Source of the DNA: Andalucia godoyi And28
Taxonomy: Eukaryota > Protista > Jakobida
Assembly: GCA_009859145.1 (NCBI GenBank)
Contig: VRVR01000049.1
Span: forward strand, 124,001 to 188,000
Reading direction: 5' to 3'
Length of the DNA stretch: 64,000 nt
Both the position numbers and the translations under genes were made by a program. The notes beneath the pieces are model-generated. The model was not told the DNA's origin. It made no database searches and saw only the letters and a list, made by a program, of their open reading frames with translations. Of the stretch, positions 6,011-53,400 are shown in pieces. How positions within the stretch are numbered: position 1 is the first letter of the stretch; each line of letters starts with the position of its first letter.

Positions 6011-6686
6011 CGTGAGGATTGGAAAGTCAAAATTCAGAGAACTCCAAGAAACCAGAAAAAGAAAAGGAAGAAAAGAAAAGAAAAAAATGAAACGAAAAAG
6101 AAATTTTTTAAAAATAAAAACCAATAGAAGAATGAAGATGAAAGATGAAGTCATCAAAATGGAGAAGGAATCTGTTGGGCTGAGAGGAGAGTGTGGGTTG
6201 GTTCGCGGGAGTTGCTGGAGACACGGAGTTTGGCGATTTTCTCTGCAGATGTAGCGTTCCGCGAAACAAAGCGCTACACTCGATGCATGGATAAGTTTTT
6301 GGGAAATGGGCGGCGACATTTCACTACTGCCGCTGGCCGCCATTTGTGTGCTGTTGTCATCTACGCCTGCTGTACACTGCATCAATGCTAATTAGTTCTA
6401 ATTGGTACTATTGCAGCGTCTGCCCTGCCAGTTCAATAGGCTGGGAAGGGCAAAAAGAAAATACAATGGGAGTTTCCAGCGTGATGCTTGGGAATTCCAC
6501 ACGACTTGTTCGCAGTTCCAGAAGAGCAAAAGTCGTGTCTCCGATGAAAAACATTTCTTTCGTTCAGTCTTGTTTTTTCAATTGCCATTCATCGTTTTCA
6601 AAGGTTTTCAAAGTGTTTCAAAGTGTTTCATCTTTTTCATATTCTTTCTCCTAAATCATTGTCTTTTTTTTTGGGTTGTTGCAAGA

Positions 6687-8813
6687 ATGCGCGCGAATAC
6701 ACTTGCATTGGTGTTCGCAGTGGTTTTGGCTGTTTATGCGGCCGCAGCAAGCGCAAAGTTGGCGCTGGCGGTCAAGAAAGTCCCGTTTCGGTTCAGCAAG
6801 CTGTATCGAGCACACCGTGATTCGACGGTGCACTTCACGATTGTCATGAAGATGCCTGCAGGAGCCATGGAGTCGCTTGATGCACTGTACCATGCAGTAT
6901 CCGATCCATCGTCTGCTCGTTTTGGTCAGTTTGCGACCAGTTCAGAGATCCTGGACATCACTTCATTGCCATCGACTGCCTATGACCAGGTTGTGAACTG
7001 GGTCACGTCGTCTGGTGCACAGGCAATGCGTGTCGGAGATCGAGTCGACGTGAAAGCATCGGTGGCGCAGATCGAATCGCTCATGAACACGGAAATGTAT
7101 GTCTATTCCCATGCCGTGGTGCGCACGCAGCGTATCCGCATCTTTGGCGAGGCGCATGTCCCTGATGCAGTTCACGAGCATATCAACTTTATTGCAGGGC
7201 TTTCTGAATTCCTTGTCGATACCAAGTACAAGGGTAAGAGGGGCAGTTCGGATGCAGCAGATATTCTCGTCACCCCGCAAGTTCTCAAGGAGTACTATGC
7301 AATCCCCGACGATGCAAAGGCAGAGGCAGATGGCAATGGAAACGGAATTGCCGCGTTCGGCGACTTTTATGTAGACGATGCTCTTCAAACATTCGATCGC
7401 ACGTACAATCTGCAGTACTACGCATTGCAGGTTACGGGATCTTCGTGCCTGCCGAACTGCGACTCTGTGGAGTCCGACTTGGACGTGCAGTACATTCAAG
7501 CCGTTGCGCAGTCACCGTACACGGAGTTCAATGAACAAGGAGGAAACGGATGGATCCTCGAATGGTCAAACTTCATCTTGGACAAGCAGACGGCCTTCGA
7601 AAAGGGCTCTGCGGATCACCATGCGTGGATTCACTCCATCTCTTACGGCTGGTCCGAGCAACTCCAGTGCGAGATTGCGTCCGATGTGTGCAACCAAATG
7701 GGATACTCTTCGCAGCAATATGTCGCGGCCGTGAACGCGAATCTTGCAAAGATTGGTGCAATGGGTCTCACCGTTCTTGTGTCTTCCGGTGACGACGGTG
7801 CCATTTCGTATTACGGGACCGGTGTCGGAAACGTTCCTCTTGATGCTCAGCGCTACTGCCCTATTGGTGGCTGCCAGCAGGTATCCTCGCAATGCATGCA
7901 GGTTATGATCGTTGACCACACCAATAACAAGCAGTGCAACTTTCCCGCAGCGCTTGGCTCTGATGAGTGCCAGAACGCTCTTCAGCAGCAAACGGTCGTG
8001 GATGCATTCAACAACTGGATCCAATCTGGACAAACTTCTTCCGGTTGCACGGTTGGCATCGACCAGGACCGCAGAAAGAACTATTTCTTGTACTCGGACT
8101 GCACTTGCGACTTGCTGAATTACAACAGTGACGTTGTCCAGTACACATACGACCCGTCTGTCAAAGGTATCTTCCCTGATTTCCCCACATCGTCTCCATA
8201 TGTTTTATCTGTCGGAGCGTCCATGTTTATTGGAGGACAGGAAATTGAAGGTGTCGCATCCCTTGGGACTGACAAGAATTCGAAGATTACTGGTGGTGGC
8301 GGATTCAGCGATGTGGCAGCCACGCCGTCTTATCAGCAGGCGGCCGTTTCCAGCTATCTTTCCAGCTTCGCATCACAGCTTCCTCCCCAAGCGCAGTTCA
8401 ATGCCAACGGTCGTGGATATCCGGACATTTCGTTCCTGGGCCACAACTACAATGTTGAGATTTCCGAGAACAATGCAGCCGAGTGCCCGTGCTCGCTGAT
8501 TGCGGTTGACGGAACGTCATGCTCGTCTCCTGCTCTTGCTGGACTGCTCACTCTCATCAATGACGAACTGCTGTCCAAGGGTCTCACTGCAATGGGCCCT
8601 CTGCAGCCGCTGTTGTATCAAGCACCTGCCAATGTTTGGAAGCCATTTACTCCGGGCGACAACAAGTGCAACCGCGCAGCATGCTCCACTCTTGGATATG
8701 TCAGCGCATCTGCCGGTCAGTGGGATCCAGCCAAGGGTCTCGGAACTCCGATTTTCCCCGTTCTCAGGGATTATATCGTCCAAAAGAAGTCCGAGGCGGC
8801 AAAAAAACAGTAG
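6687..8813 (+). CDS. Secreted sedolisin/tripeptidyl-peptidase (peptidase S53) with prodomain
   Basis: Signal peptide MRANTLALVFAVVLAVYAAA, prodomain (VSDPSSARFGQF), ESDLDVQY, SISYG, SSGDDGA, FPTSSPYVLSVGA, GRGYPDIS, DGTSCSSP, WDPAKGLGTP. Confidence 0.92.
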   Translation: MRANTLALVFAVVLAVYAAAASAKLALAVKKVPFRFSKLYRAHRDSTVHFTIVMKMPAGAMESLDALYHAVSDPSSARFGQFATSSEILDITSLPSTAYDQVVNWVTSSGAQAMRVGDRVDVKASVAQIESLMNTEMYVYSHAVVRTQRIRIFGEAHVPDAVHEHINFIAGLSEFLVDTKYKGKRGSSDAADILVTPQVLKEYYAIPDDAKAEADGNGNGIAAFGDFYVDDALQTFDRTYNLQYYALQVTGSSCLPNCDSVESDLDVQYIQAVAQSPYTEFNEQGGNGWILEWSNFILDKQTAFEKGSADHHAWIHSISYGWSEQLQCEIASDVCNQMGYSSQQYVAAVNANLAKIGAMGLTVLVSSGDDGAISYYGTGVGNVPLDAQRYCPIGGCQQVSSQCMQVMIVDHTNNKQCNFPAALGSDECQNALQQQTVVDAFNNWIQSGQTSSGCTVGIDQDRRKNYFLYSDCTCDLLNYNSDVVQYTYDPSVKGIFPDFPTSSPYVLSVGASMFIGGQEIEGVASLGTDKNSKITGGGGFSDVAATPSYQQAAVSSYLSSFASQLPPQAQFNANGRGYPDISFLGHNYNVEISENNAAECPCSLIAVDGTSCSSPALAGLLTLINDELLSKGLTAMGPLQPLLYQAPANVWKPFTPGDNKCNRAACSTLGYVSASAGQWDPAKGLGTPIFPVLRDYIVQKKSEAAKKQ

Positions 8814-10728: not shown

Positions 10729-11748
10729 TCAACAAGCCTTGGGCAGTGGTGACAACGGTGATGGCGGAAGAAGATGGTGAGCGGCATACAGAGCAATAAG
10801 AAAAGCATCTGTAATGTCAAAATTAGATGCATGCAACTGCTTTGAACGCGGTGTCAGCTTCCATTCATACACGTTTTTCGGAACCAAATCTGCGAGCTGG
10901 TCGAATACTTGCTGCTTGTTCAGCATAGCCGTGCTGCTACTTCCTTTTGCAAACATAACACTCCTCGCATTCTCCCCGTTCGCAGATGGAGGCTCCAGCG
11001 CAGAAGACAGCGAGAACTGGCGCAGAAACGATCTCGCAGTCACGGCATTCACAAGAGTGATCTGCTCGAAGCACTCGCCAACCTCATGTCTGTTCGCCTC
11101 GCCATCGCCATCACCATCGACATCGACATCGCCATTACCATGAGTACTGCTCGTCGTCCGCATCTTGTGGATTGCTTGTTGATTTTCGAATCGATGCGAA
11201 AGAAACGTTTCTGCACAAACAAACTGAGAAAGCGCGTTCATCTGTGCCAGTCCAGTCAGAACACGCCGGTTTGTGCGTCCTCCTGCAAAGTTGAAGAGAA
11301 AGTCTTCCAACGCGACCGAGTATCGGACATCGGGCCCGATACTGAGTTCGAGAGTCTTGCGAATTTCACACAGCTGGTTCTTCATTGCAAATGCCTTTTC
11401 AGGAAGCGAAACTGCATCAGAAGTATCGAGAATCGAAGCATGCACCACACGCAGTACACTCCGTGTGTCGCGCTTGTCGCTTGGAGCAGGAATAGGACAT
11501 GATTCCTTCGACCCCTTTTTCTTCGGCATACTTGATGGTATGTTGCGAACGCAAAGCACTGGATGGAAAGCAGCAATTCGTTCGGTGCTCATTGCAGCGG
11601 GGTTCTGATGCAACAACACCACACATCCCGTCGATTTTGTGTTGACATCCAGTCCAATCGTCATCCACAAAGTCCGCTGATTCTGGACTTGCGCATGTAA
11701 ACTTGAAACATGTCGTGCCCACCAGATCCTTTGCATAGTCCACACCAT
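10729..11748 (-). CDS. RuvC-like (RNase H fold) Holliday junction resolvase-like protein
   Basis: IGLDVNTKSTG, VALEDF, LAQ, KQQV and FDITDAFLIA occur in RuvC order with the acidic residues intact. Start uncertain (11748, 11736 or 11664). Confidence 0.65.
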   Translation of the reverse strand: MVWTMQRIWWARHVSSLHAQVQNQRTLWMTIGLDVNTKSTGCVVLLHQNPAAMSTERIAAFHPVLCVRNIPSSMPKKKGSKESCPIPAPSDKRDTRSVLRVVHASILDTSDAVSLPEKAFAMKNQLCEIRKTLELSIGPDVRYSVALEDFLFNFAGGRTNRRVLTGLAQMNALSQFVCAETFLSHRFENQQAIHKMRTTSSTHGNGDVDVDGDGDGEANRHEVGECFEQITLVNAVTARSFLRQFSLSSALEPPSANGENARSVMFAKGSSSTAMLNKQQVFDQLADLVPKNVYEWKLTPRSKQLHASNFDITDAFLIALYAAHHLLPPSPLSPLPKAC

Positions 11749-11790
11749 CACACACGCTGTCACGCAGTCATGCGCAACCAAGACATGCGC

Positions 11791-12404
11791 ACCGTTGAAT
11801 AATAACACGTCATTGTCATGCATACGGAAGGAAGTATGAATAAACAGACACGGTCAATACTGGCCGACAGTAGCACGTTTGTTTCACAGGGAATTCGTGC
11901 TTACGCACGCTCGGCCAGAATTCAGCCGGTGACACAGGCTCTGCATTTTCGACACTCTTTAACGCAGCATCCGTAGCCATCTATCATTCTATCATTCGTT
12001 GGTTCTGCTTTATTTATTCAAATGTGGGCGTGAGTGCGCTGGGATGACACATTCGCCTACGCCTACGCCGCTCGATGCAGGGCCTCCTACGTCCCGCAGA
12101 CCTCCTAAGAGACCACGTGTCACTACGCCTACCGCCTCTTCCTCTCGTATCTCCAGGTGCATCAATCGCTGCAACTGAGGACACGAAAGTGCCTGCTGCA
12201 AGGGCCGTCAGAATCAAAATGCACCCTTCTCAGAAACAACGTGTCACGCTGAGAAAGTGGCTCACCGATTGATCGAGATTGGGAACGGAGCGCGGAGCAT
12301 TTATCTGAAGAGCGCCGTGAGGCGTGTTGGGGGCCGATCCCCTTCCCGGCAACGGGATGCAAGACTGAATATGCATGTCTACTCGTAGATATGCATGCTC
12401 AGTG
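11791..12404. repeat. Dispersed non-coding element, copy 1 (blocks 11791-11925 and 12016-12404)
   Basis: Aligned by eye to 23767-24313: about 26 differences over the roughly 390 bp second block; contains hairpins. Confidence 0.9.
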
Positions 12405-20307: not shown

Positions 20308-20312
<5 letters not shown>

Positions 20313-21188
20313 GGTGTTGCTTGGATTGTATCGCGAGTTGCGCGACGCATTCTTTGAGGATCCCTTGGTCTTCAACATCCGGAGCACCGGACGCCATCCA
20401 TCGCACCGCTCCGTGTTCATCGACGAGCAACGCATACGCAGTCAGCAGGTTCTCGATTCCAAGCTGCTCGCGGAAGTCCGCAGAAGCCGAAAACAGGACA
20501 AGGACGTTTCGCTGCCGTTCTTCTGGAGTGGACTTACGCATTCCGCTCAGAATTGACGATCGCAAAAACGACCGGAACAGAGCCGATTCCACGACCGAAA
20601 GCTCCAACACCTGCAAGGTCGGATGCACAGGAAGCAGCTGCGTCTGCACGAGCTGCTGCCATTGCTGGATCATCGGCGTCGCAAACGCTCGAAAACCAAG
20701 CAGCACCAGGCTGACTCGACCAGTTAACTGCGAGCTCACATCAATGTTTTCATCAAGCAAGTTGACTGCCATGATTGCCGGAAATGCACGGCTCTGTGGC
20801 GACGGGATCAAAGACCGAAACCTCGGGAGCGCCTGCTTTCCTCCATCCTGACGCACAGCTTTCATGTCCGCAAAATATGACTTGCTCACTTCTTTCTTTC
20901 TGCCATTCGTCCACAAGCAGGGAAATGAAAATAAACGAAAAACATCAACATCAGTATCCACATCATTACAAGCATGAGCATACACGCGAATGCAAGGACC
21001 GAAGAAGAGAAAGAGAAGGAGGAAGAAGCATACATTCTCGCAGTTCGCGCTTCTTTGGCTTCCTTTGTGAAGAAGTCTCGGAATGAAAACCACCGCACAA
21101 ATGGTTTACTGCACAGTGCCAAGCGGCTCGATGCACACGAATGCACACAGCCGCGCACGCCCGACCCCGCAAATCTACTCGCGAACAT
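20308..21188 (-). CDS. ATP10: Mitochondrial ATP synthase assembly factor ATP10; exons 21188-21034 and 20899-20308
   Basis: Presequence MFASRFAG; phase-compatible GTATGC...CAG intron (134 nt); VSLVLLGFRAFA, NLLTAYALLVDEHGAVRWMASG. Confidence 0.85.
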
Positions 21189-21871
21189 CACCTCGTCAAT
21201 TATTATTTACTATTTTTGTTGCGCAGTCGACACTTTGACACTTTGGTACTTTTCAGATGGGCCCCAGCTGCCTTCTATCGTCCCATCCACCATCACTCCA
21301 TTCCTTATCTAGTTTTTGTTTTCCATCTTGTTTTTGCTTCGTTGTTGTTTTTGCCAGACTCGCTAGCATCAAAGCCAAACAGAAAAGAAAATAAGCAGCA
21401 GGTAAAAAATAAATGAAGTGAATATGGCATTTTCTACGAGCTTTGTCGCACACAGACGAAATGTTCACTGCAGCGTTTAACGTCACGTGAAACGAACCGA
21501 CAGTCGCGACGTCCCATTTTTTAAAATTAAATTAAGGCAGCACAGAGTGGAATATTTAACACTCCTGCAAACCTCAATTCTTCGCTAGAAACTCTCCCCC
21601 ACCGCTTCCAACTGCACTTCTCTTGGGCGGTTCTTGCAGTTCTTTATTCTTCTTTTGAAAACTATTAATATACGAATATTGCGTATTCAGCACAGAGTGT
21701 GGACGGGACGCGATTGGCAGACATGCGGACAAGCAAACCGACATTGACCCATAAATGCAACAAATACTTCCCTTTTGATTTCCAAAGACCAGACATACGG
21801 CATACAGAGAACAACAACGAAATCTGGCAATGAGAAAAACAAACAGAAAAAGAAGGAAGAACGAAGAAGAA

Positions 21872-21933
21872 AGAAGAACGAAGAACGAAGAACGAAGAAC
21901 GAAGAACGAAGAACGAAGAACGAAGAACGAAGA
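21872..21933 (+). repeat. (GAAGAAC)n heptamer tandem repeat
   Basis: About 8-9 contiguous copies, no spacers. Confidence 0.9.
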
Positions 21934-22040
21934 AAGCAACTGGACTTTCCCTCTAGCTTACATACACAACACATTCTTAAAAACAAACATGCAAACAAAC
22001 AGACGGAGAGCAATAGCAGTAGCAGAAAGAAAAATAGCGA

Positions 22041-23426
22041 TTAGAAACCAGAAAGAGAAGGGCCGCGGATAGGGGATCCAGAATTGTTTCGCAGCATTTC
22101 TTCATACAGATCAATGTACGAACCGGGAATGGCACAGTCAGTGTCTCTAAACATTGCAACAAACACACGTTCCACGGCTTCTTTCGCTGCTCCTTTGACC
22201 TGGATAAAGACATCATGCCCGAGCTGTTCTACCTTGTCGATAGACAGAACGACTGGTTCACACGTCTCGAGCTCAACGGACTCGCGATGCAACACAGCGC
22301 CAATCTGGTATCCAAGTCCCATAAGCCCGCCGAGTGTCTTTACAGAGACCGTGAACTCCATTCGCTTTGAAATCGAATACGGTCCGTCTTCCTGGACTTC
22401 CGAAAATAACACCGAGTACCTGCCGTTGAAATTGCGAAGGCGGATCCAGGACTTGCAGTCATGAGGCGACATGCTGGGCGGATGAAGATAAATGTCGTAG
22501 TACTTCTCTGTCTTGGCTGACACGTACTTTTTCGTCAGTTCCGCAGCTTCCTGCTTTGTGACCTTTGTCTTGATGGAGAACAGACCTTCGACAACCGACG
22601 AAAACGGATTGAACTTGTTCACGATGCGGATATCTGCTGTCATCAAATGCGGCTCGATGAACGCCTTGTACATCGGATAGACGGTCTGTGTAATCTGGTC
22701 AATAATGTCCTTTGCACCTTGGCCCGTCCGGGTCATGTCTCTCATGACTCGTTTCACCAAATCATAATGAACTCCACCGGAAACAGAGACGGTAAGGTCG
22801 TAAAGGTGTCGAAGCGATGGTTGCAGCGCATACGTTCCTTCCACAATGAGCACTCCATTCGACGGCGGAACGAGAGTCTGGTACGCATACCGCCCGGACT
22901 TGCGAAAGTCGTACAGTGGCGATTCCGTCGGTTTTCCTTCCTGGATTTCCATGATGTTCTTTGCCAACAGGTCAAAGTCGATCAACCGAAAATCATCAAA
23001 GTTCTCATCAATCACAGTGCGCGATGCATCCAGATAATTGTCCATGGAAATAATGAGTGTTTCAGGCAAAAACAAGTGAATCTTGTCCGCAATCGACGTC
23101 TTTCCTGCACCAGAAGGCCCTGCAATCGCCACAAACACTGTCCCCCCATTTGCATTTTTCAAGTCAACAATCGCCTTGTGCAGCACATCCACTCCCGTTT
23201 CAAAGTCCAACGTCACAGGAAGCGCATCAATGACAAATCGGCCACTCCGCGCAGTCGACGGAACAATCTTGAGTTCAGGAGCATGCACAGCACCCGCAGC
23301 AGCAGCCCCAGCACTGCCAGGAAACGACGAAGACCTCAGCAACGATGGTGGCGACATAGCAGTCGAAGAACCCGAGGAAGACGCAGAGGGACTCAATGGA
23401 TTATGAATCGGCAGCGGAGCAGACAT
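22041..23426 (-). CDS. Uridine-kinase-like P-loop domain fused to a CYTH domain (TTM1/2-like)
   Basis: AIAGPSGAGKT, ISMDNY, NFDDFRL, PLYDF, IVEGTYAL, LVKRVMRD, then YYDIYLHPP...WIRLRN, LGGLMGLGY (CYTH). Confidence 0.85.
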   Translation of the reverse strand: MSAPLPIHNPLSPSASSSGSSTAMSPPSLLRSSSFPGSAGAAAAGAVHAPELKIVPSTARSGRFVIDALPVTLDFETGVDVLHKAIVDLKNANGGTVFVAIAGPSGAGKTSIADKIHLFLPETLIISMDNYLDASRTVIDENFDDFRLIDFDLLAKNIMEIQEGKPTESPLYDFRKSGRYAYQTLVPPSNGVLIVEGTYALQPSLRHLYDLTVSVSGGVHYDLVKRVMRDMTRTGQGAKDIIDQITQTVYPMYKAFIEPHLMTADIRIVNKFNPFSSVVEGLFSIKTKVTKQEAAELTKKYVSAKTEKYYDIYLHPPSMSPHDCKSWIRLRNFNGRYSVLFSEVQEDGPYSISKRMEFTVSVKTLGGLMGLGYQIGAVLHRESVELETCEPVVLSIDKVEQLGHDVFIQVKGAAKEAVERVFVAMFRDTDCAIPGSYIDLYEEMLRNNSGSPIRGPSLSGF

Positions 23427-23507
23427 GTGAAAAGAAACCAAGGTTGAAAATGACTACAATCAAGCCCCAGGGAGATACAGAAACGAATGCAATGAGCACT
23501 ACTAATT

Positions 23508-24674: not shown

Positions 24675-26312
24675 TTAGTATCCGGAGAAGGCATTCTGGG
24701 GCAGGAACTGGATTCCGGAAGGAATGATGGTCGCCTTTTCGACAGAGGATTCCATTGCCCGGATTCCCATGAGTTTAACGTACTGTGATACGGTCGATTC
24801 AAACAGAGCTTTGTCTGGACAGTCTGGCGAGGTTCCCAAAGCAGAGATCTGAGACTTCATCTGCTGGATTTCAGCGTCGAGTGTTGCTTCGGCTGTGGAT
24901 CGCTGCGCAGCGACTCTGGCCTTAACTTGCTCAATCTCGGACAGCCCTTCGATCCTGATCTTCTCCAGCGTATCACGCTCAATGTTCTTATTCTCAGCCT
25001 CGATCACGGACTGGCGCATCAGTGCAAGCTCGCATTCGTGGTGGATCTGCTCCTTCTCTGCAGAAATCTGCGCTGCATCCTCGAGCTTAGCACACAGTGC
25101 CTTCATCGATGCCTTGAGGGCCTGGTTCAGCAGCTGGGCAATTTCTTCGTCGATGGGAACTAGTGACTTGATGTCAAGGTCGAACACATAGAACTGGTTC
25201 TCCGGGAAGAGACGGCCGACTGTTGGCAATCCAGGTAATATGCTTGTGTACGACTTAAAGAGACGGTTTTTGAGCATTTCGTTCGCGCGCGTATGGAACG
25301 TTTCAAAGTCATGCTGAGCAGCTTCTTCGCGGATGCGCGAAGCAAGAGACGCGCATGCGTTGCCGATGAAATCCTCGGTTTGGAACACCTTGAATAAGTC
25401 CGTTTTCTTGGACCTGTCCACCATGAAGCACCACTTGTACGAAATGTCGAGTTGCAGAACTGCATTGTCCTTTGTACGCACAATAAACCGATCATTCATG
25501 AAGTCCTGGCCAATTCGAATCTTCGCAGCCACAATCTGGTTCTCCCGCTTTGGAATCCCTGCGCTGATGGACATCACCTTGATGTTTTCATGCGGCTGAA
25601 GCAAGTGCACGCACGGTCCAAGAATCACGTCCTGTTCATTCGTCTCGCGATTAATGACGCATACACACTCATCATCCGCCAATGCAACCGAAAATGCAAA
25701 AATCGAAGGCGAATGGTCAATGCCGAGCGCCGAACACTCTCGGTAGCTCAGTGTTCGAGCGTACCGTTCCTCATCCACTTCGAGCGAGTACACACATGGC
25801 CCAAGAACAAGCCTGACTTTTCCATCCTTGAGTGACCGAACGTACAAGGCAGAGTTGTTGGCAATGGTCACGGCGTCCTCGACTCGCACAACCTGATCCA
25901 CAACCGAAGGAATGTACCGGCACGGACCCGCCACTTTGAACAAGGTTCCTGGCTGGTATTTTGCGTGCCCCTTCAGCGCCTGGCACACAAGAGACTGATT
26001 CTGATTCAAAACATGGACTCTTCGAATCTCGTTCTGTTCAATCACTTCTTGCGGATACAGCGCAAACTCGGTTGGGCCCGCGCGCACTTCCCGACAGCCG
26101 AATTTGTACTGCAAAGTCTTTTTGTCCCACGGCGAAACAATGACCGCATACTGATTCTCATTCAGCACCGTCTTTTTAGACTTGCGTTCAAGAGTCATGT
26201 GGGGGTCAAGCACAATTCTCGCCGGCCCAGGAACAACCGTCTGCGAACCATCGTTGGTGTTGAGCAACACACAGTATTCATCTCGAAACAGCACAATCAG
26301 ATCATTGTCCAT
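24675..26312 (-). CDS. Shortened major vault protein homologue A (545 aa)
   Basis: Five MVP-type repeats (e.g. AVTIANNSALYVRSLKDGKVRLVLGP), shoulder domain (SISAGIPKRE...GQDFMND...RTKDNAVLQLDISYKWCF...EDFIGNACASLASRIR...FETFH), LDIKSLVPID leading into a long cap helix. Confidence 0.88.
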   Translation of the reverse strand: MDNDLIVLFRDEYCVLLNTNDGSQTVVPGPARIVLDPHMTLERKSKKTVLNENQYAVIVSPWDKKTLQYKFGCREVRAGPTEFALYPQEVIEQNEIRRVHVLNQNQSLVCQALKGHAKYQPGTLFKVAGPCRYIPSVVDQVVRVEDAVTIANNSALYVRSLKDGKVRLVLGPCVYSLEVDEERYARTLSYRECSALGIDHSPSIFAFSVALADDECVCVINRETNEQDVILGPCVHLLQPHENIKVMSISAGIPKRENQIVAAKIRIGQDFMNDRFIVRTKDNAVLQLDISYKWCFMVDRSKKTDLFKVFQTEDFIGNACASLASRIREEAAQHDFETFHTRANEMLKNRLFKSYTSILPGLPTVGRLFPENQFYVFDLDIKSLVPIDEEIAQLLNQALKASMKALCAKLEDAAQISAEKEQIHHECELALMRQSVIEAENKNIERDTLEKIRIEGLSEIEQVKARVAAQRSTAEATLDAEIQQMKSQISALGTSPDCPDKALFESTVSQYVKLMGIRAMESSVEKATIIPSGIQFLPQNAFSGY

Positions 26313-26743
26313 TCTTTTCTTCTACTGCTACTGCTACTGCTACTGCTACTGCTGCTGCTGCTGCTCGAGCGTCTCTTACTCGTCTCTTCTTTCTTTTATT
26401 AGAGTGTGAAGCTAACAGAAACTGTTTGAGCAGTAACCACAGAAGAATGGGTTCGTTGTGTGTGGACTGTATGCGATGCAAGGTTGGGAGCCGAATCTGA
26501 TCCGCAACCGTCAGTCCATGTCAGAAACAAAAAGGTGACCATTGGTGCGCCCTGACCTGCTTGATGCGGAAAGAATCGGATTCCGATTCTGACAATGCTG
26601 TGTGACACTTGGCAGATTTTCCAGTTGTTGGACATATATTATGTTGCCTGTGCACGTTTTTATTTATTAATTAATTAATTTATTATTTTGATCCTTTCTT
26701 CCCTTTTTTGATTGATTGCAAAGGCTGAAAAAAAGGACTGGAG

Positions 26744-28402
26744 ATGCCCCCGAAAAAGATTGTGACGACGAGTACTGCGACGATTCTGCGCACGAACGAG
26801 TTTGTGTATGTGCAGAATAAGGACACGGGCGCTGTTGCTGTCCACCAAGGGCCTCGGCGAGTGACACTGAGTGGCAATGAATCGTTTATTTCCGACATTC
26901 ACCAAGCAACAGTGATTTCGGAGCGCCAGTACATCATTGTGCTGAACTATCAAGGGAACATGGGTTCTCGCAAGGTGATTCACGGCCCGTGTTCCTACAC
27001 GCTTGCGTATGGCGAGAGTCTTGAAGATGGGATCGTGAAAGAAATGTGCTTGCTGATGCCTAACGAAGCGCTCTTGGTGGAATCAAACTGCAAGACCGAC
27101 ACTCGTGAGGCCGGTGAACGGTACTTGGTGCAAGGTCCGTGTCAGTTCGTGCCTTCGGAAACTGAAAATGTGCTGAAGCAGTACGAAACGATGCAACTCG
27201 GACTTAATGAGGGAATATACGTGAAGAATGTGAACACTTCGCAGATTCGGCTTGTGCAGGGTCCGTGTGCGTACATGCTGACGGCCGAAGAAGAGCTGCA
27301 CAGTATCTCCTATGCGGGTACGGGAATGGATGTGTCACTCCAGACGGATCTTGCAAACCGACCGTTCGAGTTCTCTGCGTTGGCAGTGCAACTTGAGGAA
27401 GGAGAGGGAATCATGGTAGAGGATCTGGAGAACAGTCGGTCAAGGTGCATTCTCGGACCGCGTTCCGTTGTTCTGAACCCGTCTGAACGCGTCCGAACAC
27501 TCAGGCTTTCTGCGGGAAAACCAAAGGTGTGCAATGTTTTACAGATATCCAAGTTGAAGATTGGACCAATCCCTACCTCGGATCTCATCACCGTCTTCAC
27601 CAAGGATAACGCGGGACTGGCGATCCTCATTACGTACACGTTTGTGTTCCTCGTCACCGAGGAGACTGCACACAAGATGTTCTTGCTGAACGACCCCATT
27701 GGGCACTTGTGTGCTTCCGTGTGCTCCGACATCCGCGAGCTCGCAACAAAGTACACGTTTGAAGAGTTCCACAACGGCACTGTGTCACTTATTTCGAAAG
27801 CAATCTTCAAGCATCTTGCCAATCTAACGAATCCGTCGGAAGATCCGGTTCCCATTTCCGAAGGACCAAAGGGCTCAGCAAACCCAAAATACGCATCGTG
27901 GACAGCGTGCAGGTGGTTTGCTTCCAACCGCATGTGTCTGTATGGAATTGATGTGAAACAGGTCAATCCCACTTCTGCGGAAATTGGATCCTTGCTTTCG
28001 GAGTCCATCAAGAGCAACATGTCGATCGTGTGCAAGAAGATGGAGCAGCAGGCGCAGCTTGAGCTTCAGAAGGGTCGGCTTGCCGGCCAGTCTCAGATTG
28101 CAGAGCTCAGGGGCCAGCTTATCGCCCTGCAGAATGAGAACTACAGGCTCGAAACCCTGGAGCGTGCCAAGATCCAAGGCCTTGCCGACGTGGAGCGTGC
28201 GAAGTACAAATCGCAAGGAATTGCCATGCAGGGTGAGCTTGACTCGGATATAGAACGGCAGAAGATCGTCCGCACCGTGAACATTCTTTCGGCCAATGGC
28301 GGAGATCGTTACATTGAGCTGGAGCGCATTCGTGGCTTGAGCAAGGTCCGCCAGAACTGGGTGATTCCCACGTCGTCCTCCCTCAACGTGCTTCCCCACT
28401 AG
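26744..28402 (+). CDS. Shortened major vault protein homologue B (552 aa)
   Basis: Five MVP-type repeats (e.g. MQLGLNEGIYVKNVNTSQIRLVQGP), shoulder (LRLSAGKPK...KIGP..TSDLITVFTKDNAGL...DPIGHLCASVCSDIR...FEEFH), GIDVKQVNP leading into a cap helix. Confidence 0.88.
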   Translation: MPPKKIVTTSTATILRTNEFVYVQNKDTGAVAVHQGPRRVTLSGNESFISDIHQATVISERQYIIVLNYQGNMGSRKVIHGPCSYTLAYGESLEDGIVKEMCLLMPNEALLVESNCKTDTREAGERYLVQGPCQFVPSETENVLKQYETMQLGLNEGIYVKNVNTSQIRLVQGPCAYMLTAEEELHSISYAGTGMDVSLQTDLANRPFEFSALAVQLEEGEGIMVEDLENSRSRCILGPRSVVLNPSERVRTLRLSAGKPKVCNVLQISKLKIGPIPTSDLITVFTKDNAGLAILITYTFVFLVTEETAHKMFLLNDPIGHLCASVCSDIRELATKYTFEEFHNGTVSLISKAIFKHLANLTNPSEDPVPISEGPKGSANPKYASWTACRWFASNRMCLYGIDVKQVNPTSAEIGSLLSESIKSNMSIVCKKMEQQAQLELQKGRLAGQSQIAELRGQLIALQNENYRLETLERAKIQGLADVERAKYKSQGIAMQGELDSDIERQKIVRTVNILSANGGDRYIELERIRGLSKVRQNWVIPTSSSLNVLPH

Positions 28403-33802: not shown

Positions 33803-36712
33803 TTACTGCTTCTTTTGCTGGTCAAAGAACTTTCGACGGATGAGACTGATGAGTTCGGGAATCCCTGCCAAACAACCGCTGGGCAGCTGGAGTGTCTTGA
33901 TGCCGTTGCCTTCCTTCTCAAGAAGATCGCTGAAGCTCAGCCGGTCGCGCACAGGCCACGCCTTCTTCTCATCCAACGACATCTTCTGGTAGGCCTTTCC
34001 CTGAGGAAAATACGAAACCTCGAAAATATCCCCGCGTGGGCAGAAGAACTCTGTATTGATCTTCAGACTTTTCCACAACAACTCGGAAGTGGGAGACGGC
34101 CTGAGAATGCTCTTCTTCTTCAGGTCCGCGAGAGGCTTTGCATAGAAGAATCCATCCACCGTTTCGATTGCAGCTGCGGACTGGTCTCGTTCGCCGAAAT
34201 GACCAAGATCGTTGATCGTACCTTCATTGGCAGTTCCAAACGAGACCACAGATTTGCCTCCATACTCGGAATTGGCGCTGTCGCCTGAACCCCGGCGTTG
34301 CAAGATGACAGACCGTCGACGCTGCATTGACGTTGGCGTAGCATCCCGTTCAAACTGCTGCTTCATCAACAAGATTTCTCCGTCGACGTTCTTCAGAAGA
34401 TTCTTGACAAATACGGCAGATGCCTGAATGCGGATGAGACCATCCGAAACCAATCGCTCCTTCGACGATTCAATGTTGGCAAGATCATGTTCCAGATAAT
34501 CGAAGAACGGAAGAACGTGTGAACCAAACAAGAGCGGTCGAATGAGAGTCGGAGTTAGCACGACAAGAGAGTCAGCAATCTGCGTAAGCATTGCAGCAAG
34601 CTGAGTGAATTGTTTTTGAGTACGGAGTAGTTCCGTGCTTCTGGTTCGCGTGAGAAGAATGGAATAGGATAGAGGATTCAAGTGGATGGGCGATGCGTCA
34701 TCTTCCATGCGAGTCAGAGCGGATCGATGAGAGAACGAAAGACGAGGAAGTTCGATGAGCGACAACATCAAGAGCTGTCGGACTCGGGCGAACCCCTCCA
34801 GGTCCGAAGACACCTTCCAAACAGCAAGCAAGTTGTTCAGAGCACTGACGTCTTCGGATCGCAGCCATGAATCAAGGGAATATGGATAAAAGAAGCCATC
34901 GCGGAAGAACCACGAACCTGTCAAGCGAACGACGATCCGAGAAACAATGGGTATCAACAAGAGCGAGTGGTTTGCGCTCCACTTGGAGGCCGTAACACAC
35001 TCGATGGCGGCCTCGAATGCAGAGTCCAGCGTACCCCACATAATAGACCAATTCTTCCGTGTCTTGTCCTTGACAACCCGCCCAGACGCTTCTTCGAACC
35101 TGTGCAGGTCCCTCTTCTCTGCGCAAACGGAAACATACGTCTTCCCAAGAGCCAGCAAAGATTCCAGCCCCGCCGGCCCCTTCAAGTACGCAGCGCTGAA
35201 AAGACCTTGAACATCGGGCGAGAGTTCGTGAAACGATTCCATGATTGCATCAAGCAAGAGATAGACATGCTTCACCAAGGAATCGATGCGCAAGTCAAGG
35301 ATAAACGCTGCATCGGAAGACTGAGAAGGAGGAAGATCAAGTGTGAAGTCCACCGATGGCAAGTCAATCGACGAAAAGACGGGAATAAACGGACCATCGC
35401 CAACCAACGGATCAATTTGAGAGAGCGCATCCTGCAGAGTAAGTTCAGAAGCAAGAATTCGAGCCGTTGCAGCTGCAAAGGCGGACTGCGACGCAGCCGG
35501 GGGTGACGAAAGTTCAGACTGTCGGTCCCTCGGTCGACTGTCTATTTGTAATCGAGAAGCGGAGGCTGATGAGAGCAGCACGGGTGACGCCCGTTGTTGC
35601 AAAGCGTTCGCAAGCTTCGCAGACTGCGGTCTCAAGTTTCCCGTGCTTGAGGAGGATTGGTTGGAAACAAGATACAGTTTCTTTCTGAGGACATTCCGCT
35701 CCTCAATCTTCTCCGCAAGTCGTTGAATCATAACAATCACTTCATCTTTTGTATCATCGAAATTCTCTCGAACCTGCTCTCGTTCGGCCGCAGCATGAGC
35801 GAGCGGCGAGGCCTTTGCCTTTGACTGCAACTCTGCATAGAACCGCAAGTACCCTTGCTCGACCTGAAATGCAGCACCACCAATATGACCACCTTCTCGT
35901 TCCGAAAACAGCGCACCCCCCGGCACGCCATTTGTGTTGGCAACCGACAAGGACGCTATCGACACGGAAGACGGAGCAGAATGGGGACCCGGAGAAAGCT
36001 GTCTAGACGACGAAGATCCAAACCCGGCTGGTGGCGACGGCGATCTCGTGCCTGCAGATCCACGCAAGCCTGGGCCAGCCGACGCGGGCAACAAGTGTGA
36101 TGTGAAGACAGAAGAGATGGATCCAGGAGCAGCCGCACCCAAAACAGACGACTTTGAAGACTGCTGGTCCTCTCGCAGCACACGTTCTCGTTGCTTCACG
36201 ACTCCTTGGAAGTACAGCGATTCCACCTTGTTGCTAATATCCCTTTCCGACAACTTCCTCTCCATCCCCTTTCTTTCCGTCAGCCGAGCTTCCGTTGGAG
36301 ACTCAGTCCTCCCGCGAATGGGGCGGCTCCGAAAAGACAAGTTAAATTCCTTGACAACTGTCGGTCGACCAGTGTACTGTGCAGAGGTCCTCGTCGGGGA
36401 CGTTGCTTCCTGCCTTTGCTTCCTTGCATGCTCCAGTCTGTTGATGAACTGAATCTCTCCCTTCTTTGGCGCCGCGTCCTTCGGAGAAGGAACAACAACC
36501 TCCGTGGTTGTCCGCAGACTTGGCGAAAACGTGCATTCCACCTCCTTTGCATTTTCCTTCAACGCACGCATGCTTGCGATCCTCGAGTCGCGCGACTGCA
36601 GCCATTCAATCTCACGCTCATACATCCCACGTTGCCTCGTCGTCTGCGGCTTAGGAGACGCCGACTCACGCGAGGACGAAGTTCGCGAGGACGATGCTTC
36701 CGAATAATCCAT
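33803..36712 (-). CDS. Large hypothetical protein (about 970 aa)
   Basis: Long uninterrupted ORF flanked by AT-rich spacers; basic N-terminus with an ECTFSP motif, helical middle region; no family recognised. Start taken at MDYSEASS (36739 is an alternative). Confidence 0.75.
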   Translation of the reverse strand: MDYSEASSSRTSSSRESASPKPQTTRQRGMYEREIEWLQSRDSRIASMRALKENAKEVECTFSPSLRTTTEVVVPSPKDAAPKKGEIQFINRLEHARKQRQEATSPTRTSAQYTGRPTVVKEFNLSFRSRPIRGRTESPTEARLTERKGMERKLSERDISNKVESLYFQGVVKQRERVLREDQQSSKSSVLGAAAPGSISSVFTSHLLPASAGPGLRGSAGTRSPSPPAGFGSSSSRQLSPGPHSAPSSVSIASLSVANTNGVPGGALFSEREGGHIGGAAFQVEQGYLRFYAELQSKAKASPLAHAAAEREQVRENFDDTKDEVIVMIQRLAEKIEERNVLRKKLYLVSNQSSSSTGNLRPQSAKLANALQQRASPVLLSSASASRLQIDSRPRDRQSELSSPPAASQSAFAAATARILASELTLQDALSQIDPLVGDGPFIPVFSSIDLPSVDFTLDLPPSQSSDAAFILDLRIDSLVKHVYLLLDAIMESFHELSPDVQGLFSAAYLKGPAGLESLLALGKTYVSVCAEKRDLHRFEEASGRVVKDKTRKNWSIMWGTLDSAFEAAIECVTASKWSANHSLLLIPIVSRIVVRLTGSWFFRDGFFYPYSLDSWLRSEDVSALNNLLAVWKVSSDLEGFARVRQLLMLSLIELPRLSFSHRSALTRMEDDASPIHLNPLSYSILLTRTRSTELLRTQKQFTQLAAMLTQIADSLVVLTPTLIRPLLFGSHVLPFFDYLEHDLANIESSKERLVSDGLIRIQASAVFVKNLLKNVDGEILLMKQQFERDATPTSMQRRRSVILQRRGSGDSANSEYGGKSVVSFGTANEGTINDLGHFGERDQSAAAIETVDGFFYAKPLADLKKKSILRPSPTSELLWKSLKINTEFFCPRGDIFEVSYFPQGKAYQKMSLDEKKAWPVRDRLSFSDLLEKEGNGIKTLQLPSGCLAGIPELISLIRRKFFDQQKKQ

Positions 36713-37161
36713 GTTTTTGTTTTCTTTTTCCGCGACCACAAACCAGCCTTTTCCTACCTTCCCTTCTTTCCCAGTACTACAAAAGAGGAAGCAACGGAAA
36801 CCCGATTAAACGATAATAACACTATTTCCAAATGAACGAGAGACACAGCACTTCTCGTGCACTGATTTTGTAAAGCTGTGGAGCTGTGGCGCTGTGGAGC
36901 TGGGGAATTGGGCCTTCAGAGTATCGAGTCGTGGATTCTCCCCGCAGCTTGTGAAGGAGACAATGATCACGAAAAGCAGCCGAGAAGCAGAAGAAAAACG
37001 TCCTTGCAGCCTCCAGCATCAACCGTGGCAGAGAAGAACGATGTCGAACCGTGTCGACAGCATTTTTTCGTTTTAGCTTCGTGGTCGTCGTGGCGTTCGC
37101 AGAATTTGCGTATTGTTGTTGCAGGAAACGGTTCAGAAGAATGGATAATGCATGAACGCGA

Positions 37162-42807: not shown

Positions 42808-44403
42808 CTATTCAGTGGGCTGCGGCGCACTGCAAGCGGGGTCCGTTCCTTCTGAGAACTTGTCGTCGTCCGGAGCCGGGGCGGACGATGATGCGAGGAA
42901 GCCATTGGTACTGGTAGTGGGTCGTACGAATTGCATGAGCTGCGTCTTTTCGTCCTCGAGCCGGCGTTGCCGTTCGTCTTCTTCAGCCAAGTGGTTTCTC
43001 ATTTCGACAAGTTCGCGCAGCAGCGCTTCCTTCAGTTCTTGGTTTTCGGCTTCTAATTGGCGAACACGATCTTCGAGGATCTTCTTCTCCTTGACTCTGC
43101 CTTGCGCATCTGCTTTTGCTTCTTGTGTAATTCGACCCTGACGTTCCTTTTCTTTTTGAAGAGAAGTAATGAGCATGTCCTTCTCCCGTTCGAGAGACTC
43201 GACCGATTTCTCCAGCGTTCGGATTCTTGTCTTGTACTTCGACCGCTCGGCCTCCAGACTGCGGTCCGCAGCCCCTCCTCCTCCACCACCGCCGTCGTGC
43301 GTCTTGTGATTAGAGGTCGCAGGTCTCTTTGCAGTCTCTGGTTGCACTGCCGCGGCAGTAGAACGTAGGAGGTGCAGTCCTTGTATTTCCCGTTCTTTCT
43401 GATTCACCTGGCTCTTCAACTCTGCGATTTGCAGCGCTAGGTCTTGGCGTTCACGCCGTTGCTGGGCTTCATTCGCCTCCGCCGCCGCTCGAAGTCGCTT
43501 GATTTCCCCGACAAAGCTGTCTCTCTCGGCCTGCACTTTTTCTAGCCGATCCTCCTTCTCTTTGGATGCGGCCTTTGTCGATTCGCTCTGGCGATCTCGG
43601 TCTCGTAGAGTCTCTCTGAGCCTTGTAATTTCCTCATTCAGACTGCGCATTCTGTCCTCTCCATCGATTTTCGACTTTGCCATCTGGTCCAGAACAGTTT
43701 TCTGCGTCGAACTCTGGTACTTCTTCAGTTGTTCGATTTCGATGCGCAGGCGGGACACGTGTATTCGAAAGTGTTTTTTCCACGTATCTAGCACACCACT
43801 CTGTTCCTCGAGTGCTGTCTCAGCGGCAGTCGCTCTGTCTTCGAATGCCTTTCCTTTTTTTGTCCATTCCTTCACCAGATTCTTCTGCTGTTTCAACCTG
43901 TCTTCCAAGTCACTCGGCGTCGATGAAGCTGGCATGCTGTTCTGTGCACTCATCGATGCAATCTTGGCTATTTTTTCCTCTAATTCTTCGGCAGTCTTTT
44001 CCTTTGCGTCCTTTTCTCTTTTCAAGCTTGTCTGCAGCTCTGCAATCTTGCGTTTTCCCGCCAGCAGCTCTGCGTTCATTCTCGTCTCCTCGTCTTTTGC
44101 TCGCCGGAGTTCGTCGCTCATAATCAACATCTCAGCATCCCTCTTTCGCACTTGTTCTTCTAACAGATCCAATTTTTCAGAGTCATCAAACAGCGTTGGA
44201 TGCTTTCCGGGATATGCAGTATGGCTGTTGCGCGGAACCGGCGTTTCTTGCATCATACTACCAGCTTTTGCACTCGCCGCGGGCAGGGTCGACCGCACGG
44301 GCTTCCGGGCCTCCTTTCTTTCTCTTGCATTCTCTATTGCAGACTGCGCAGCTCTCAGCTGACTTTCATGATCAATGCTGACTTCATACGGCCCTTTCTT
44401 CAT
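42808..44403 (-). CDS. Coiled-coil hypothetical protein (531 aa)
   Basis: Long ORF with heptad-like E/K/R/L content; no family recognised. Confidence 0.75.
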   Translation of the reverse strand: MKKGPYEVSIDHESQLRAAQSAIENARERKEARKPVRSTLPAASAKAGSMMQETPVPRNSHTAYPGKHPTLFDDSEKLDLLEEQVRKRDAEMLIMSDELRRAKDEETRMNAELLAGKRKIAELQTSLKREKDAKEKTAEELEEKIAKIASMSAQNSMPASSTPSDLEDRLKQQKNLVKEWTKKGKAFEDRATAAETALEEQSGVLDTWKKHFRIHVSRLRIEIEQLKKYQSSTQKTVLDQMAKSKIDGEDRMRSLNEEITRLRETLRDRDRQSESTKAASKEKEDRLEKVQAERDSFVGEIKRLRAAAEANEAQQRRERQDLALQIAELKSQVNQKEREIQGLHLLRSTAAAVQPETAKRPATSNHKTHDGGGGGGGAADRSLEAERSKYKTRIRTLEKSVESLEREKDMLITSLQKEKERQGRITQEAKADAQGRVKEKKILEDRVRQLEAENQELKEALLRELVEMRNHLAEEDERQRRLEDEKTQLMQFVRPTTSTNGFLASSSAPAPDDDKFSEGTDPACSAPQPTE

Positions 44404-50095: not shown

Positions 50096-50488
50096 CTTCA
50101 CGAAAAAGAACTATGTACTTTCGCAACTTCCTTGCATGTATGTGTATACACATATATATGCGTGTGTCGCAGGCGGTCCCTTCTCTTCTTTCTCGGAAAG
50201 ATTGGAACGGAACTCAGAAACCCATCCACAGTTTCGGCATCTTCAAGATCGCCAGGGCCTTTCCAGTTTCTTGTCTTCTGCTGCTCGTACATTCGTGCGG
50301 GAACTTCAACCTTTCTGCGAGAACGCACGGAAAAAGACACAGTGGCCGGTGGCAGCAGAAGAGGGGGGGGCACCAAAGGTTCTCGTAAGATGTTATTCAT
50401 TTATAATTCTCATTCATTATTTATGTTTTTTTTGTTTTGTTTTATTGGTGGCTGTGCTTGAGAAACCCTCTTTCATTGATCTGCTCTA

Positions 50489-53400
50489 TCAGGGACGCTG
50501 ACGGGGAGCCCACTTGTCGATCATGGCGATGAGAGTGTTCTTTCCGACAGGCTTGAGCAGGCAGTCAGAAAACATTGTACTTTGAAGAAACGCCTCCATT
50601 CCGTTCTTGCCTTTTTGGTCTGCCGCGTCCGCAGTGATATCAAACAGACAGTTTGCAGTACATCCAACGATGGGCAAATTCGTCAGTCCAAATCTGCGCA
50701 GTTCCTTGCATGCTTCCACACCATCCTTAACCGGCATCACCATGTCCATGAGAACAACGTCAAACATACGAGCTTTGCAGGAAGACTTGCCCTTGCAAGT
50801 CCGCTCTACAAGCGCCTTCCTTTCCAAAACTGCGTCGATCCCCTCTTTTCCGTCCACTGCAACCCGAACTTTGAAGCCTGCTTTCTGGAGCACAAGACAC
50901 ATCACTTTTCGAACCACTGCATCGTCGTCCACAACTAGGATCTCGCGATCTTCGTCATCGAAATCAGAGTTGGAAGAGTCGCTTGACAGTACTGATGCAG
51001 ACACTGGCAACCCAGACGCTTGCACCGGCTGCTGCTTTTGCAAAATCGACTGAAGATCTGATTCCGGACAGGTGGTGATTCTCCACAAAATATCAAAAAT
51101 GAGTTCTAACCGGGATGGTTTTCGCAGAAAGTTGGATACCGAGAACTGAACATGGCATTTCGACGCAATCATATCCAGCACTCTCTCTGCACGAAAATCG
51201 CACAGGATCTCATCCTCGTGCATTCGTGAAACAAACACTGGAAAGACGGAAGTTTTCTGAAGATCTCCAGAGGCAGACAGTCGACGGTGTTCTTGAATGC
51301 TGCCTGCCAATGCGGCGAGCCCCTCGTCGTCATCCATATCAATGAACAGAGCGATTCTAGAATCCTTTGGCATCGGTCCTCGCGCACGCTTTATAGTGGA
51401 GCTGAATTCTGCTAACGATGCACAAACAGTCACTTCGGATTCCCAATCGCTGCCCCGAACCACCTCTGAAATTTCAGACGTGACAGACGACATCAGATCC
51501 CGAATTCCCGGAATCAACTCGCAGGTTCTTCCGAGCATAGCGACGCACAATCTCGGTACTGTGTGGTTGTCGACTACGTATGCACGGACGTCTTGAAGTC
51601 TCGATGCATAACTGCTGCGCGAGCCCGGTTGAATATGAAACGGAATTGTGACTGCAAACGTTGACCCAGTACCTCGCCCGAGAGACCAGGCATCACAGCG
51701 ACCATTCATACATTTCACCAAGGTCGCCGAAATAGACAAGCCAAGTCCCGTTCCTAAATGCTGCTGCGAAAACCCGAATGTTGGAGTGCCAAGTTGAGAA
51801 AACGGATGCCAAAGCAACGAAGACTCCTCTTGATCGAAACCAACACCAGTGTCCACAACCTGAATTTCAACGTCCAGTACATCAGGAGTCGATTCATCAA
51901 GGACAGGAGCGTTTTCATAAAACTGATGCATCAGAACGACAGACCCGGAGTCTGTCAGGTTTTCTTGCGGTGGAAATGCAGCGTGTCTTTCTTTCGCAGA
52001 AATACGCAGCTGCACCGAACCGGAAATTGGAGTAAACTTGACAGCATTGGAAAGCAAATTCAGGATGACTTGCTTCGTTCGCCTCGAATCCCCGACAACC
52101 AGAAACTTCATGCTGGGATCACACACAACAGATAGTTCAATTTTCTTGGAGTTGGATTGCAAAGTGACAAGTTCGATGCATTCTTCAGCGACCATCAAAA
52201 TGTCAAACGGCTTCTGTTCCAAAACAAATTTTCCGGATTCTATTCTGCTCGAGTCAAGGACATCTGCAATGAGCAAAAGGAGGAAATCGGTTGCTGATGC
52301 AATGTACCCAACGCACTCACGCTGGTACCGAGACAGCGACTTTTCATCCTGCAAGATTTGAGACATGGACAAGATTCCCTGGATGGGATTTCGCAATTCA
52401 TGGGATAGAGTATGTACAATCATGGACTTCATCTTGTTCGCTGCCTCGGATTTGAGAGCCTGGATTTCTGCGGTCTGGCGACGATTCGCCTCCGACACAT
52501 CTCGAAATACAACAACACACAAAGGAGTTTCCGAAACAGGATCAAACGTCTTTGAAAGGTTCATGGAAAACTGAATATCCGGATGGGCGGACAGCGTGAC
52601 CATCTTGTTTTCTTCTTCAATACTTGCAACAGCGTCCACAAAAGACCGAACATCTTCCACGGTGTCGTGAAGTTTCGAAAACTGATCCAATTTTTGGTAA
52701 ACGCCGGATATCTTCCGAACCTTTTCAGCCTGGTCAGCCGCGTCTGACGCGACGTCCTCCAAGATCAAAGACTCTGAGCAAACTTCAAATAACTGTTCCG
52801 CAACAGAGTTCGTTTCGACAATTGCTCCCGTGTCTTCACGGAAAACCACCATTGCTTCCTTGACAGATCGCCAGATATACCGCAGTTGCTGTTCGGACTG
52901 AAACAGCCTCTTTTCGATGAGTATTCTGTCCAGAGCGTTCACAATAATCTCCGCAACAGAAATCATGAATGTCGAAAAGTCGCCCAACGGACGAAAATCT
53001 GAATGAAATACAATGCCCAAAAAAAGCTGTCGACCGCTTCTCTTCGACAATCGGACCATCTTCAGCTCATGGTTCTTCGCTACGTCGTCCTCGGACAAAC
53101 CAATATCCAAGTTTCGCACCAAACACGCGATTTCGGTTTGGCGAATCCCGAAAGCAACATCCAACTCGGGTAGATTGCGGACTGCAAAGTCCATAAGAAA
53201 GTCTATCTGTTGTCTGCCCAATCGCATATTTCGAATGGAAGACAACATTGGAGACTGCCTATTGTTGTTGATTGAAACTGGAAGTCGATGTTTCAACGCA
53301 TAGTCTTCCACGGCAACATCAAAGCCCGCAACAAGAAATACAGTGCGAATTGGACGCGTTTGTTCAATTGCCGAATTCCTGCGAAGAAGCGTCCGATCCA

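Follow-up and report, generated by a model that had tools for sequence, protein, structure and literature searches.

Two Short Major Vault Protein Paralogues Encoded Head to Head in Andalucia godoyi: Candidate Subunits of a Shortened Vault-like Shell

Introduction

Do two short vault protein genes that lie head to head in the jakobid Andalucia godoyi encode the subunits of a shortened, two-component vault? Few particles of eukaryotes are as large and as abundant as vaults, whose core function has yet to be established. The canonical major vault protein (MVP; ~861–893 amino acids, aa) self-assembles alone, as a 78-mer, into a shell of 39-fold symmetry and ~67 nm. The genes in question are contained in a 64,000-nucleotide (nt) stretch of A. 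godoyi And28 (contig VRVR01000049.1, positions 124,001–188,000, forward strand), referred to here as the window, whose positions serve as coordinates throughout. Open reading frame (ORF) A (545 aa; 24675–26312, minus strand) and ORF B (552 aa; 26744–28402, plus strand) are transcribed divergently from the two sides of a 431-base-pair (bp) spacer, and each is uninterrupted from its ATG to its stop codon. A first-pass annotation of this DNA had described them as intronless, miniature MVP paralogues and had raised the possibility of a smaller, heteromeric cage; the coordinates and the intronless state are borne out by the ORF list.

That A and B are genuine short MVP paralogues is practically certain. 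The best reading overall, in which confidence is evenly divided, is that they form a co-regulated, probably heteromeric, shortened vault-like shell that does without TEP1. The evidence for this reading includes the architecture of the two proteins and the retention of the head-to-head pair in six genomes.

Neither the family nor these two genes are new to the literature, and the caution expressed at first pass, that short MVPs might already be known, was justified. The short family with its two paralogues was first reported, from in silico work on Naegleria, in 2012, when two short MVPs of N. gruberi, D2V5B9 (559 aa) and D2W0Z9 (530 aa), were found to have fewer barrel repeats and were modelled with the MVP fold, and a hetero-oligomer of the two was already considered (Daly et al., 2013, PMC3595041). 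ANDGO_00780 and ANDGO_00782 have since been tabulated as short-form MVP homologues of A. godoyi (Zavrelova et al., 2025, J Biol Chem, PMC12547018, Table S3), and Jakobida and Heterolobosea are reported to possess only short forms, without full-length MVP or TEP1 (PMC12547018). The gene arrangement of the short MVPs is mentioned in neither study, and neither specifies which repeats are retained; a preprint on viral MVPs (10.1101/2023.11.10.566534) does not treat the short forms. What is added here is the R1 plus R6–R9 architecture, the orthology of the A and B types, the deep conservation of the head-to-head layout, and the sister relation to single-copy bacterial short forms.

Architecture of the Two Proteins

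A Pfam scan for Vault and MVP_shoulder domains, as suggested at first pass, gave matches above the gathering cut-offs in both ORFs. ORF A is matched by MVP_shoulder (E 8.6e-31; 106.9 bits, cut-off 25) and Vault_3 (E 1.4e-15), and ORF B by MVP_shoulder (E 5.3e-20; 72 bits, cut-off 25) together with Vault_3, Vault and Vault_4. The AlphaFold2 models of A (pLDDT 82.9) and B (pLDDT 79.6) have the same layout, in which five repeats are followed by a shoulder and by one long helix of ~104 residues; Pfam and the models agree with the order of repeats, shoulder and cap helix that had been read from the letters. The strong divergence of the paralogues, also noticed then, is seen in a full-length alignment with 28% identity (E 9e-71).

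In A, the five beta-repeat modules occupy aa 5–266 (25515–26300, minus strand) and are delimited by DSSP of the model as aa 5–50, 54–102, 106–150, 155–211 and 215–266. The shoulder domain (aa 268–388; 25149–25511, minus strand) has an SPFH-like fold, judged from secondary Foldseek matches, and is covered by Pfam PF11978 over positions 1–118 of 118; in the model it spans aa 270–388. It leads into a cap helix of 103 residues (aa 389–491; 24840–25148, minus strand), which is continuous in the model and aligns to the cap helix of rat MVP up to about residue 748; a low-confidence helix (aa 503–520) and a disordered tail follow. In B, the AlphaFold2 model and the MAFFT alignment place the five beta-repeat modules at aa 13–272 (26780–27559, plus strand). 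The shoulder domain (aa 276–409; 27569–27970, plus strand), defined by Pfam, alignment and model, carries a disordered insertion at aa 357–385 that is present in none of the 15 other aligned short forms, and the modelled cap helix of 105 residues (aa 412–516; 27977–28291, plus strand) is followed by a short helix (aa 520–533). The cap helix of rat MVP reportedly measures ~155 residues in the 2009 structure, compared with ~104 in A and B.

The identity of the five repeats can be read from three comparisons. A phmmer search against Protein Data Bank (PDB) sequences aligns A 47–202 with rat MVP 273–433 and A 216–491 with rat MVP 467–748. When the short forms are aligned by MAFFT with four full-length MVPs, their residues 1–45 fall on full-length residues 1–46, after which the alignment jumps to about residue 270 and takes in all that follows, from the later repeats to the shoulder and cap helix. 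A hidden Markov model (HMM) built from the first ~70 residues of the short forms matches the N-terminal R1 in all 13 full-length MVPs searched (22–55 bits), and scores at most 21 bits elsewhere. The short proteins are thus composed of R1, R6–R9, the shoulder and a shorter cap helix, with R2–R5 absent in register; in A, module one is the counterpart of canonical R1, and modules two to five are those of R6–R9. The matched truncation proposed in the first-pass annotation is therefore imprecise, since the proteins, although matched in length, keep R1 and lack R2–R5. A truncation at the N-terminus, or at an end generally, was considered and ruled out, because the N-terminal module is the canonical R1 and it is four internal repeats that are gone. 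With R1 and R6–R9 only, A and B do not have the nine repeats (R1–R9) and the ~850–900 aa of the canonical vault subunit.

Solved vault shells are by far the best structural matches of model A (Foldseek E ~1e-39; TM 0.65–0.68), and chance is no explanation for agreement of this degree. Its shoulder and cap helix also give secondary matches to the cages of HflK/C, prohibitin, erlin, flotillin and stomatin (E 1e-9 to 1e-5). This likeness of A to the SPFH/Band 7 family is structural only, and the Band_7 profile scores 15.1 bits, below its cut-off of 23.6 bits. An N-terminal hydrophobic helix anchors many SPFH proteins; none is found in model A or B, both of which start with beta strands.

The Short MVP Family

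A word-indexed homologue search with A returned 6 proteins only, and the family became visible through an exhaustive profile search, which yielded 2220 MVP-related representatives. About 25 of these (clusters at 50% identity) span the whole short profile in one stretch, are 505–585 aa long, and are clearly apart from the canonical forms of 820–900 aa. They include proteins of Acrasis kona (P0011), Naegleria lovaniensis and N. fowleri (P0019 and P0067) and N. gruberi (D2V5B9, P0074), and two Trinity transcripts of Stygiella incarcerata (P0003 and P0070), which indicate that both types are transcribed in this sister jakobid. A and B have the features of the short MVP family of Discoba, namely a length of ~505–585 aa, absence of R2–R5 in register, and monophyly with respect to full-length MVPs. 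Every genome or transcriptome with adequate data contains exactly two short copies, according to the present searches and to Table S3 of PMC12547018.

Two further groups of short-MVP-like proteins lie outside the A and B clades (P0071, 793 aa; P0076, 752 aa; P0086, 584 aa; P0080, P0082, P0087, P0088 and P0090). One of the groups adjoins the bacterial branch described below, and includes proteins with ~240 extra N-terminal residues in which no Pfam match is found.

Conservation of the Head-to-head Pair

The divergent arrangement of an A-type and a B-type gene is kept in six genomes, which include a jakobid and a heterolobosean. Besides the A. godoyi pair, it is found in the contig of the closest A-type relative (L002; spacer of 666 bp, B-type gene cut by the contig end), in Acrasis kona (L003; 70 bp), in a 321-kb metagenomic eukaryote contig of JGI sample 3300062347 (L004; <273 bp), in an ENA metagenome contig (L006; 4–58 bp) and in NCBI assembly GCA_002919055.1, of 58% GC (L010; 75 bp). 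The spacers of these five other genomes thus range from 4 to 666 bp, and the genes that flank the pair have no Pfam family in common across the loci.

In A. godoyi, the spacer (26313–26743), which is defined by the ORF list and has equivalents in the other genomes, is presumed to be a bidirectional promoter that also contains both 5′ untranslated regions. Repeat searches of its 431 bp found a (CTG/CTA)n microsatellite immediately upstream of the A start codon (26322–26365) and an AT-rich palindromic TTAATTAA-type tract ~55–85 bp upstream of the ATG of B (26659–26689), and nothing beyond these two. The palindrome might speculatively serve as a core promoter element. A scan for bacterial-type promoters and terminators is uninformative for a eukaryotic spacer.

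Age of the Duplication and Bacterial Relatives

The history of the pair was examined with neighbour-joining trees (200 bootstraps, with explicit counts of bipartitions) and with A-type and B-type HMMs from which one genome at a time was left out. A larger tree of 55 taxa has weak deep nodes and was used for a few shallow groupings only. Short forms are separated from full-length MVPs in 200 of 200 bootstraps, and the kinetoplastid full-length MVPs included in the trees (P0048 and P0055) group with the other full-length proteins and not with the short clade (200/200). Eukaryotic short forms are in turn separated from bacterial ones in 199 of 200. A species-specific grouping of the two partners was recovered in 0 of 200 bootstraps for the window together with L002, for Acrasis and for L004, in 3 of 200 for L006 and in 19 of 200 for L010. 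A recent, species-specific duplication, considered as an origin of the pair, is ruled out by these counts for the window, Acrasis and L004.

The picture is clearer in the leave-one-genome-out comparison, where all 12 partners from the six genomes score higher on the HMM of their own type. ORF A scores 656 bits on the A-type and 466 on the B-type model (+190), ORF B scores 533 bits on the B-type and 393 on the A-type model (+140), and the margins fall to +33 and +27 bits in L010. The Naegleria proteins can be assigned in the same scheme, D2V5B9 (P0074) grouping with the A-type and the 530-aa protein of N. lovaniensis and N. fowleri (P0019) being B-type. By the bootstrap counts and the own-type scores, the A/B duplication and its inverted layout are older than the split between jakobids and heteroloboseans, and the layout has been kept in most of the lineages sampled.

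The sister group of the eukaryotic short clade (199/200) consists of single-copy bacterial short forms of 556 aa (P0023/P0065), encoded on Patescibacteria-like contigs (L007:4315–5985, L008:4294–5964 and L009:822–2492). These contigs derive from groundwater and from a metagenome-assembled genome, and one member of the cluster is labelled Patescibacteria; the neighbouring genes encode ribosomal protein S16, a radical SAM protein, TrmB, TrmD, KhpA and DHODH. P0023 scores 389 bits on the A-type and 391 bits on the B-type HMM, as expected if it diverged before the A/B duplication. With this sister group, and on a more speculative reading, the five-repeat form could be the ancestral state, from which the nine-repeat MVP arose by internal expansion of repeats, or there could have been an ancient transfer between bacteria and Discoba.

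A Model for a Shortened Vault-like Shell

In the model favoured here, a short promoter region common to A and B would drive the two genes in opposite directions and so keep their dosage matched. The subunits would then lie side by side in the manner of MVP in vaults, with contacts along repeats, shoulders and cap helices, and would make up a closed cup; two cups would join by their retained R1 modules, giving a barrel wall of 5 + 5 repeats as compared with 9 + 9 in the canonical particle. The shell would most likely hold both paralogues and work without TEP1. Because its long axis would span 5 + 5 repeats, and not 9 + 9, the barrel is expected, in a qualitative sense, to fall well short of the ~67 nm of the canonical vault, and strict alternation of the subunits would make the rotational symmetry even, unlike that of the 39-fold canonical shell. 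The balance of evidence leans somewhat towards a closed vault-like shell, and is level on the presence of both paralogues in one shell. A bolder version, in which the pair is a conserved two-gene module, probably more than 1 billion years old by a rough guess, for an obligate, alternating A–B mini-vault with five repeats per subunit, even symmetry, and independence of both TEP1 and vault RNA, is considered rather unlikely. The idea of a smaller heteromeric cage, which the first-pass annotation had based on the A. godoyi locus, may nevertheless be regarded as more plausible now that the head-to-head pair is seen to be kept in six distant genomes.

Several observations weigh against this model. 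Genes of A. godoyi are packed tightly and neighbours are often oppositely oriented (PMC7050145), so that the head-to-head layout in this species alone means little. No A-type gene lies within 10 kb to the left or right of the B-type gene of Naegleria lovaniensis (L005:10001–11695), and the two Naegleria paralogues have distant locus tags (PMC12547018 Table S3); linkage is therefore not obligatory, and it appears that an ancestral linkage was lost in Naegleria and kept by the heterolobosean Acrasis. Support for the two clades is moderate (108/200 for the A core and 105/200 for the B core plus the L006 partner), and is weakest for L006 and L010. The region beyond the cap helix cannot be credibly aligned to the canonical cap ring (0–3 identities in ~20 residues) and is modelled at low confidence, so closure of the cap could differ. 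Docking with RosettaDock paired the shorter Naegleria paralogue with itself more readily than it paired the paralogues in combination (PMC3595041). No particle of the short-MVP kind has been reported from any jakobid or heterolobosean, and no experimental literature on the short forms was found.

Some of these points would suit two separate homo-oligomeric particles, or paralogues used in different life stages or compartments, with the gene layout being the footprint of an ancient inverted duplication left unbroken in compact genomes. Canonical MVP is known to assemble alone, and a homomeric short shell is presumably possible for the single-copy bacterial forms; the docking result, the unlinked genes tolerated by Naegleria, the identity of only 28% between A and B, and the insertion peculiar to the shoulder of B all speak for such an arrangement. 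However, every lineage sampled has kept exactly two types, and six genomes with unlike flanks have kept the divergent pair, which can hardly be accounted for unless co-regulation is selected for, and the partners are matched in the number of modules and in the length of the cap helix (103 and 105 residues). Separate homomers are accordingly judged fairly unlikely.

It is also conceivable that no closed shell is formed, and that the proteins build rings that stay open, half-cups or scaffolds of the SPFH type, perhaps at membranes or the cytoskeleton. The SPFH-like shoulder, with its Foldseek matches to HflK/C, prohibitin, erlin, flotillin and stomatin cages, the weak Band_7 match of A, the C-terminal region unlike the canonical cap ring and the reported absence of TEP1 (PMC12547018) point in this direction. 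In the other direction, the Band_7 match stays under its cut-off, vault shells remain the best structural matches by far, and neither model has a hydrophobic anchor helix before its first beta strands. Moreover, R1, the module by which the two half-vaults of the rat structure meet at the waist, is specifically retained, and open scaffolds are regarded as distinctly improbable. That the short length is an artefact, whether of gene models cut short, of pseudogenes or of a misassembled full-length MVP, is scarcely credible. Some short trypanosomatid MVP entries have been ascribed to sequencing artefacts (PMC12547018), but here both ORFs are intact, ~25 clusters cover the whole short profile, and the same architecture recurs in independent genomes and transcriptomes with R2–R5 absent in register in every member. 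The shortened, probably heteromeric vault-like shell is therefore retained as the best reading of the pair.

Genomic Setting

The window is gene-dense nuclear DNA in which strands alternate gene by gene and hardly any ORF is interrupted; the genome is described as compact, ~20 Mb in size and mostly intronless, with spacers of 44–691 nt (PMC7050145). Its other genes include those for MCM7, a CCT subunit, a tubulin-tyrosine ligase, ribosomal P0, GUF1/LepA, the polymerase delta subunit B, ATP10, malic enzyme and a hybrid histidine kinase. Three published N-terminal sequences of A. godoyi (Gray et al., 2020, PMC7050145, Table S1) match the window exactly, namely those of malic enzyme (_00751; start 4591, minus strand), ATP10 (_00760; start 21188, minus strand) and GUF1 (_00855; start 39183, plus strand). 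An origin from a trypanosomatid, to which the intronless ORFs of ~50% GC had at first pointed, is ruled out by these exact matches and by the alternation of strands. The order of locus tags, 00751, 00760 and so on to 00855, brackets ANDGO_00780 and ANDGO_00782, so that ORF A is one of these two genes and ORF B the other. The published start of ATP10 lies upstream of the mechanically called ORF (20308–21093, minus strand), which fits the single 134-nt intron of this gene (Gray et al., 2020); ATP10 (20308–21188, minus strand) is among the few interrupted genes of the window.

A 969-aa ORF of the penicillin-amidase family (47192–50101, minus strand; E 6e-156) adjoins a gene (50489–54502, minus strand) whose product, of 1337 aa, is a hybrid histidine kinase that includes a receiver domain. 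Both are of bacterial-looking types for the nuclear genome of a protist and could be old horizontal acquisitions. The pro-kumamolisin activation domain of an 803-aa ORF (6402–8813, plus strand), together with a weak match to subtilase, suggests a peptidase of the sedolisin type. At 21687–22072, in the spacer beside a PRK/CYTH-domain gene (22041–23441), a low-complexity repeat (for example, with the unit KNEERRT) can be read on both strands as overlapping ORFs, rich in K/E/R or in S/F; it is probably simple sequence without a coding role. The large ORFs at 33803–36739 (978 aa), 42808–44403 (531 aa) and 10729–11823 (364 aa), all on the minus strand, gave no Pfam match at E ≤ 1e-4. An Rfam scan of the 64-kb window found no family at the gathering score, vault RNA included, and no tRNA match.

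Comparison with Known Systems

The closest known counterparts are the short MVPs of Naegleria and other Discoba (PMC3595041, PMC12547018), which belong to the same family, have fewer barrel repeats and occur as two diverged paralogues per species; the genes are unlinked in Naegleria and head to head in A. godoyi, and nothing fundamental otherwise sets them apart. With the canonical vault shell (PDB 4V60, 4HL8 and 9BW5), A and B share R-type beta repeats, an SPFH-like shoulder and a long cap helix in the same order, at 24–26% identity. Canonical MVP differs in having nine repeats instead of five, whereas the short forms are two obligatorily retained paralogues without a recognisable cap-ring sequence.

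A precedent for a heteromeric shell exists in T. brucei (MVP1/2/3) and Dictyostelium (MVP alpha/beta), whose diverged paralogues co-assemble in one shell (PMC12547018). Unlike A and B, these proteins are full-length, and their genes are not described as adjacent in PMC12547018. A functional analogy is offered by HflK/HflC, prohibitin 1/2 (PHB1/2), erlin 1/2 and flotillin 1/2, which form closed cages of two alternating paralogues but are membrane-anchored and have no vault repeats; the resemblance is one of analogy and not of membership. An alternating mini-vault would stand, by its design, between these two-paralogue SPFH cages and the canonical vault. Among bacterial MVP homologues, which have been described before (bioRxiv 10.1101/872010), P0023/P0065 have the same five-repeat short architecture as A and B and 29–30% identity to each, but are encoded by a single gene without a partner and have a Band_7 match above the threshold.

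Concluding Remarks

The value of the present analysis lies in comparative refinement, that is, in a pairing found to be kept in at least six distant genomes, and not in the discovery of the family. A head-to-head pair that stays stable while its flanks change is a signal typical of cases in which the stoichiometry of two partners matters, and the question of a heteromeric cage can now be tested by co-expression of the two genes. A naturally minimal vault, built from two subunits of five repeats each in a lineage that lacks TEP1, would reveal which parts of the vault shell are indispensable, and for work on encapsulation it would provide a natural scaffold of smaller size.

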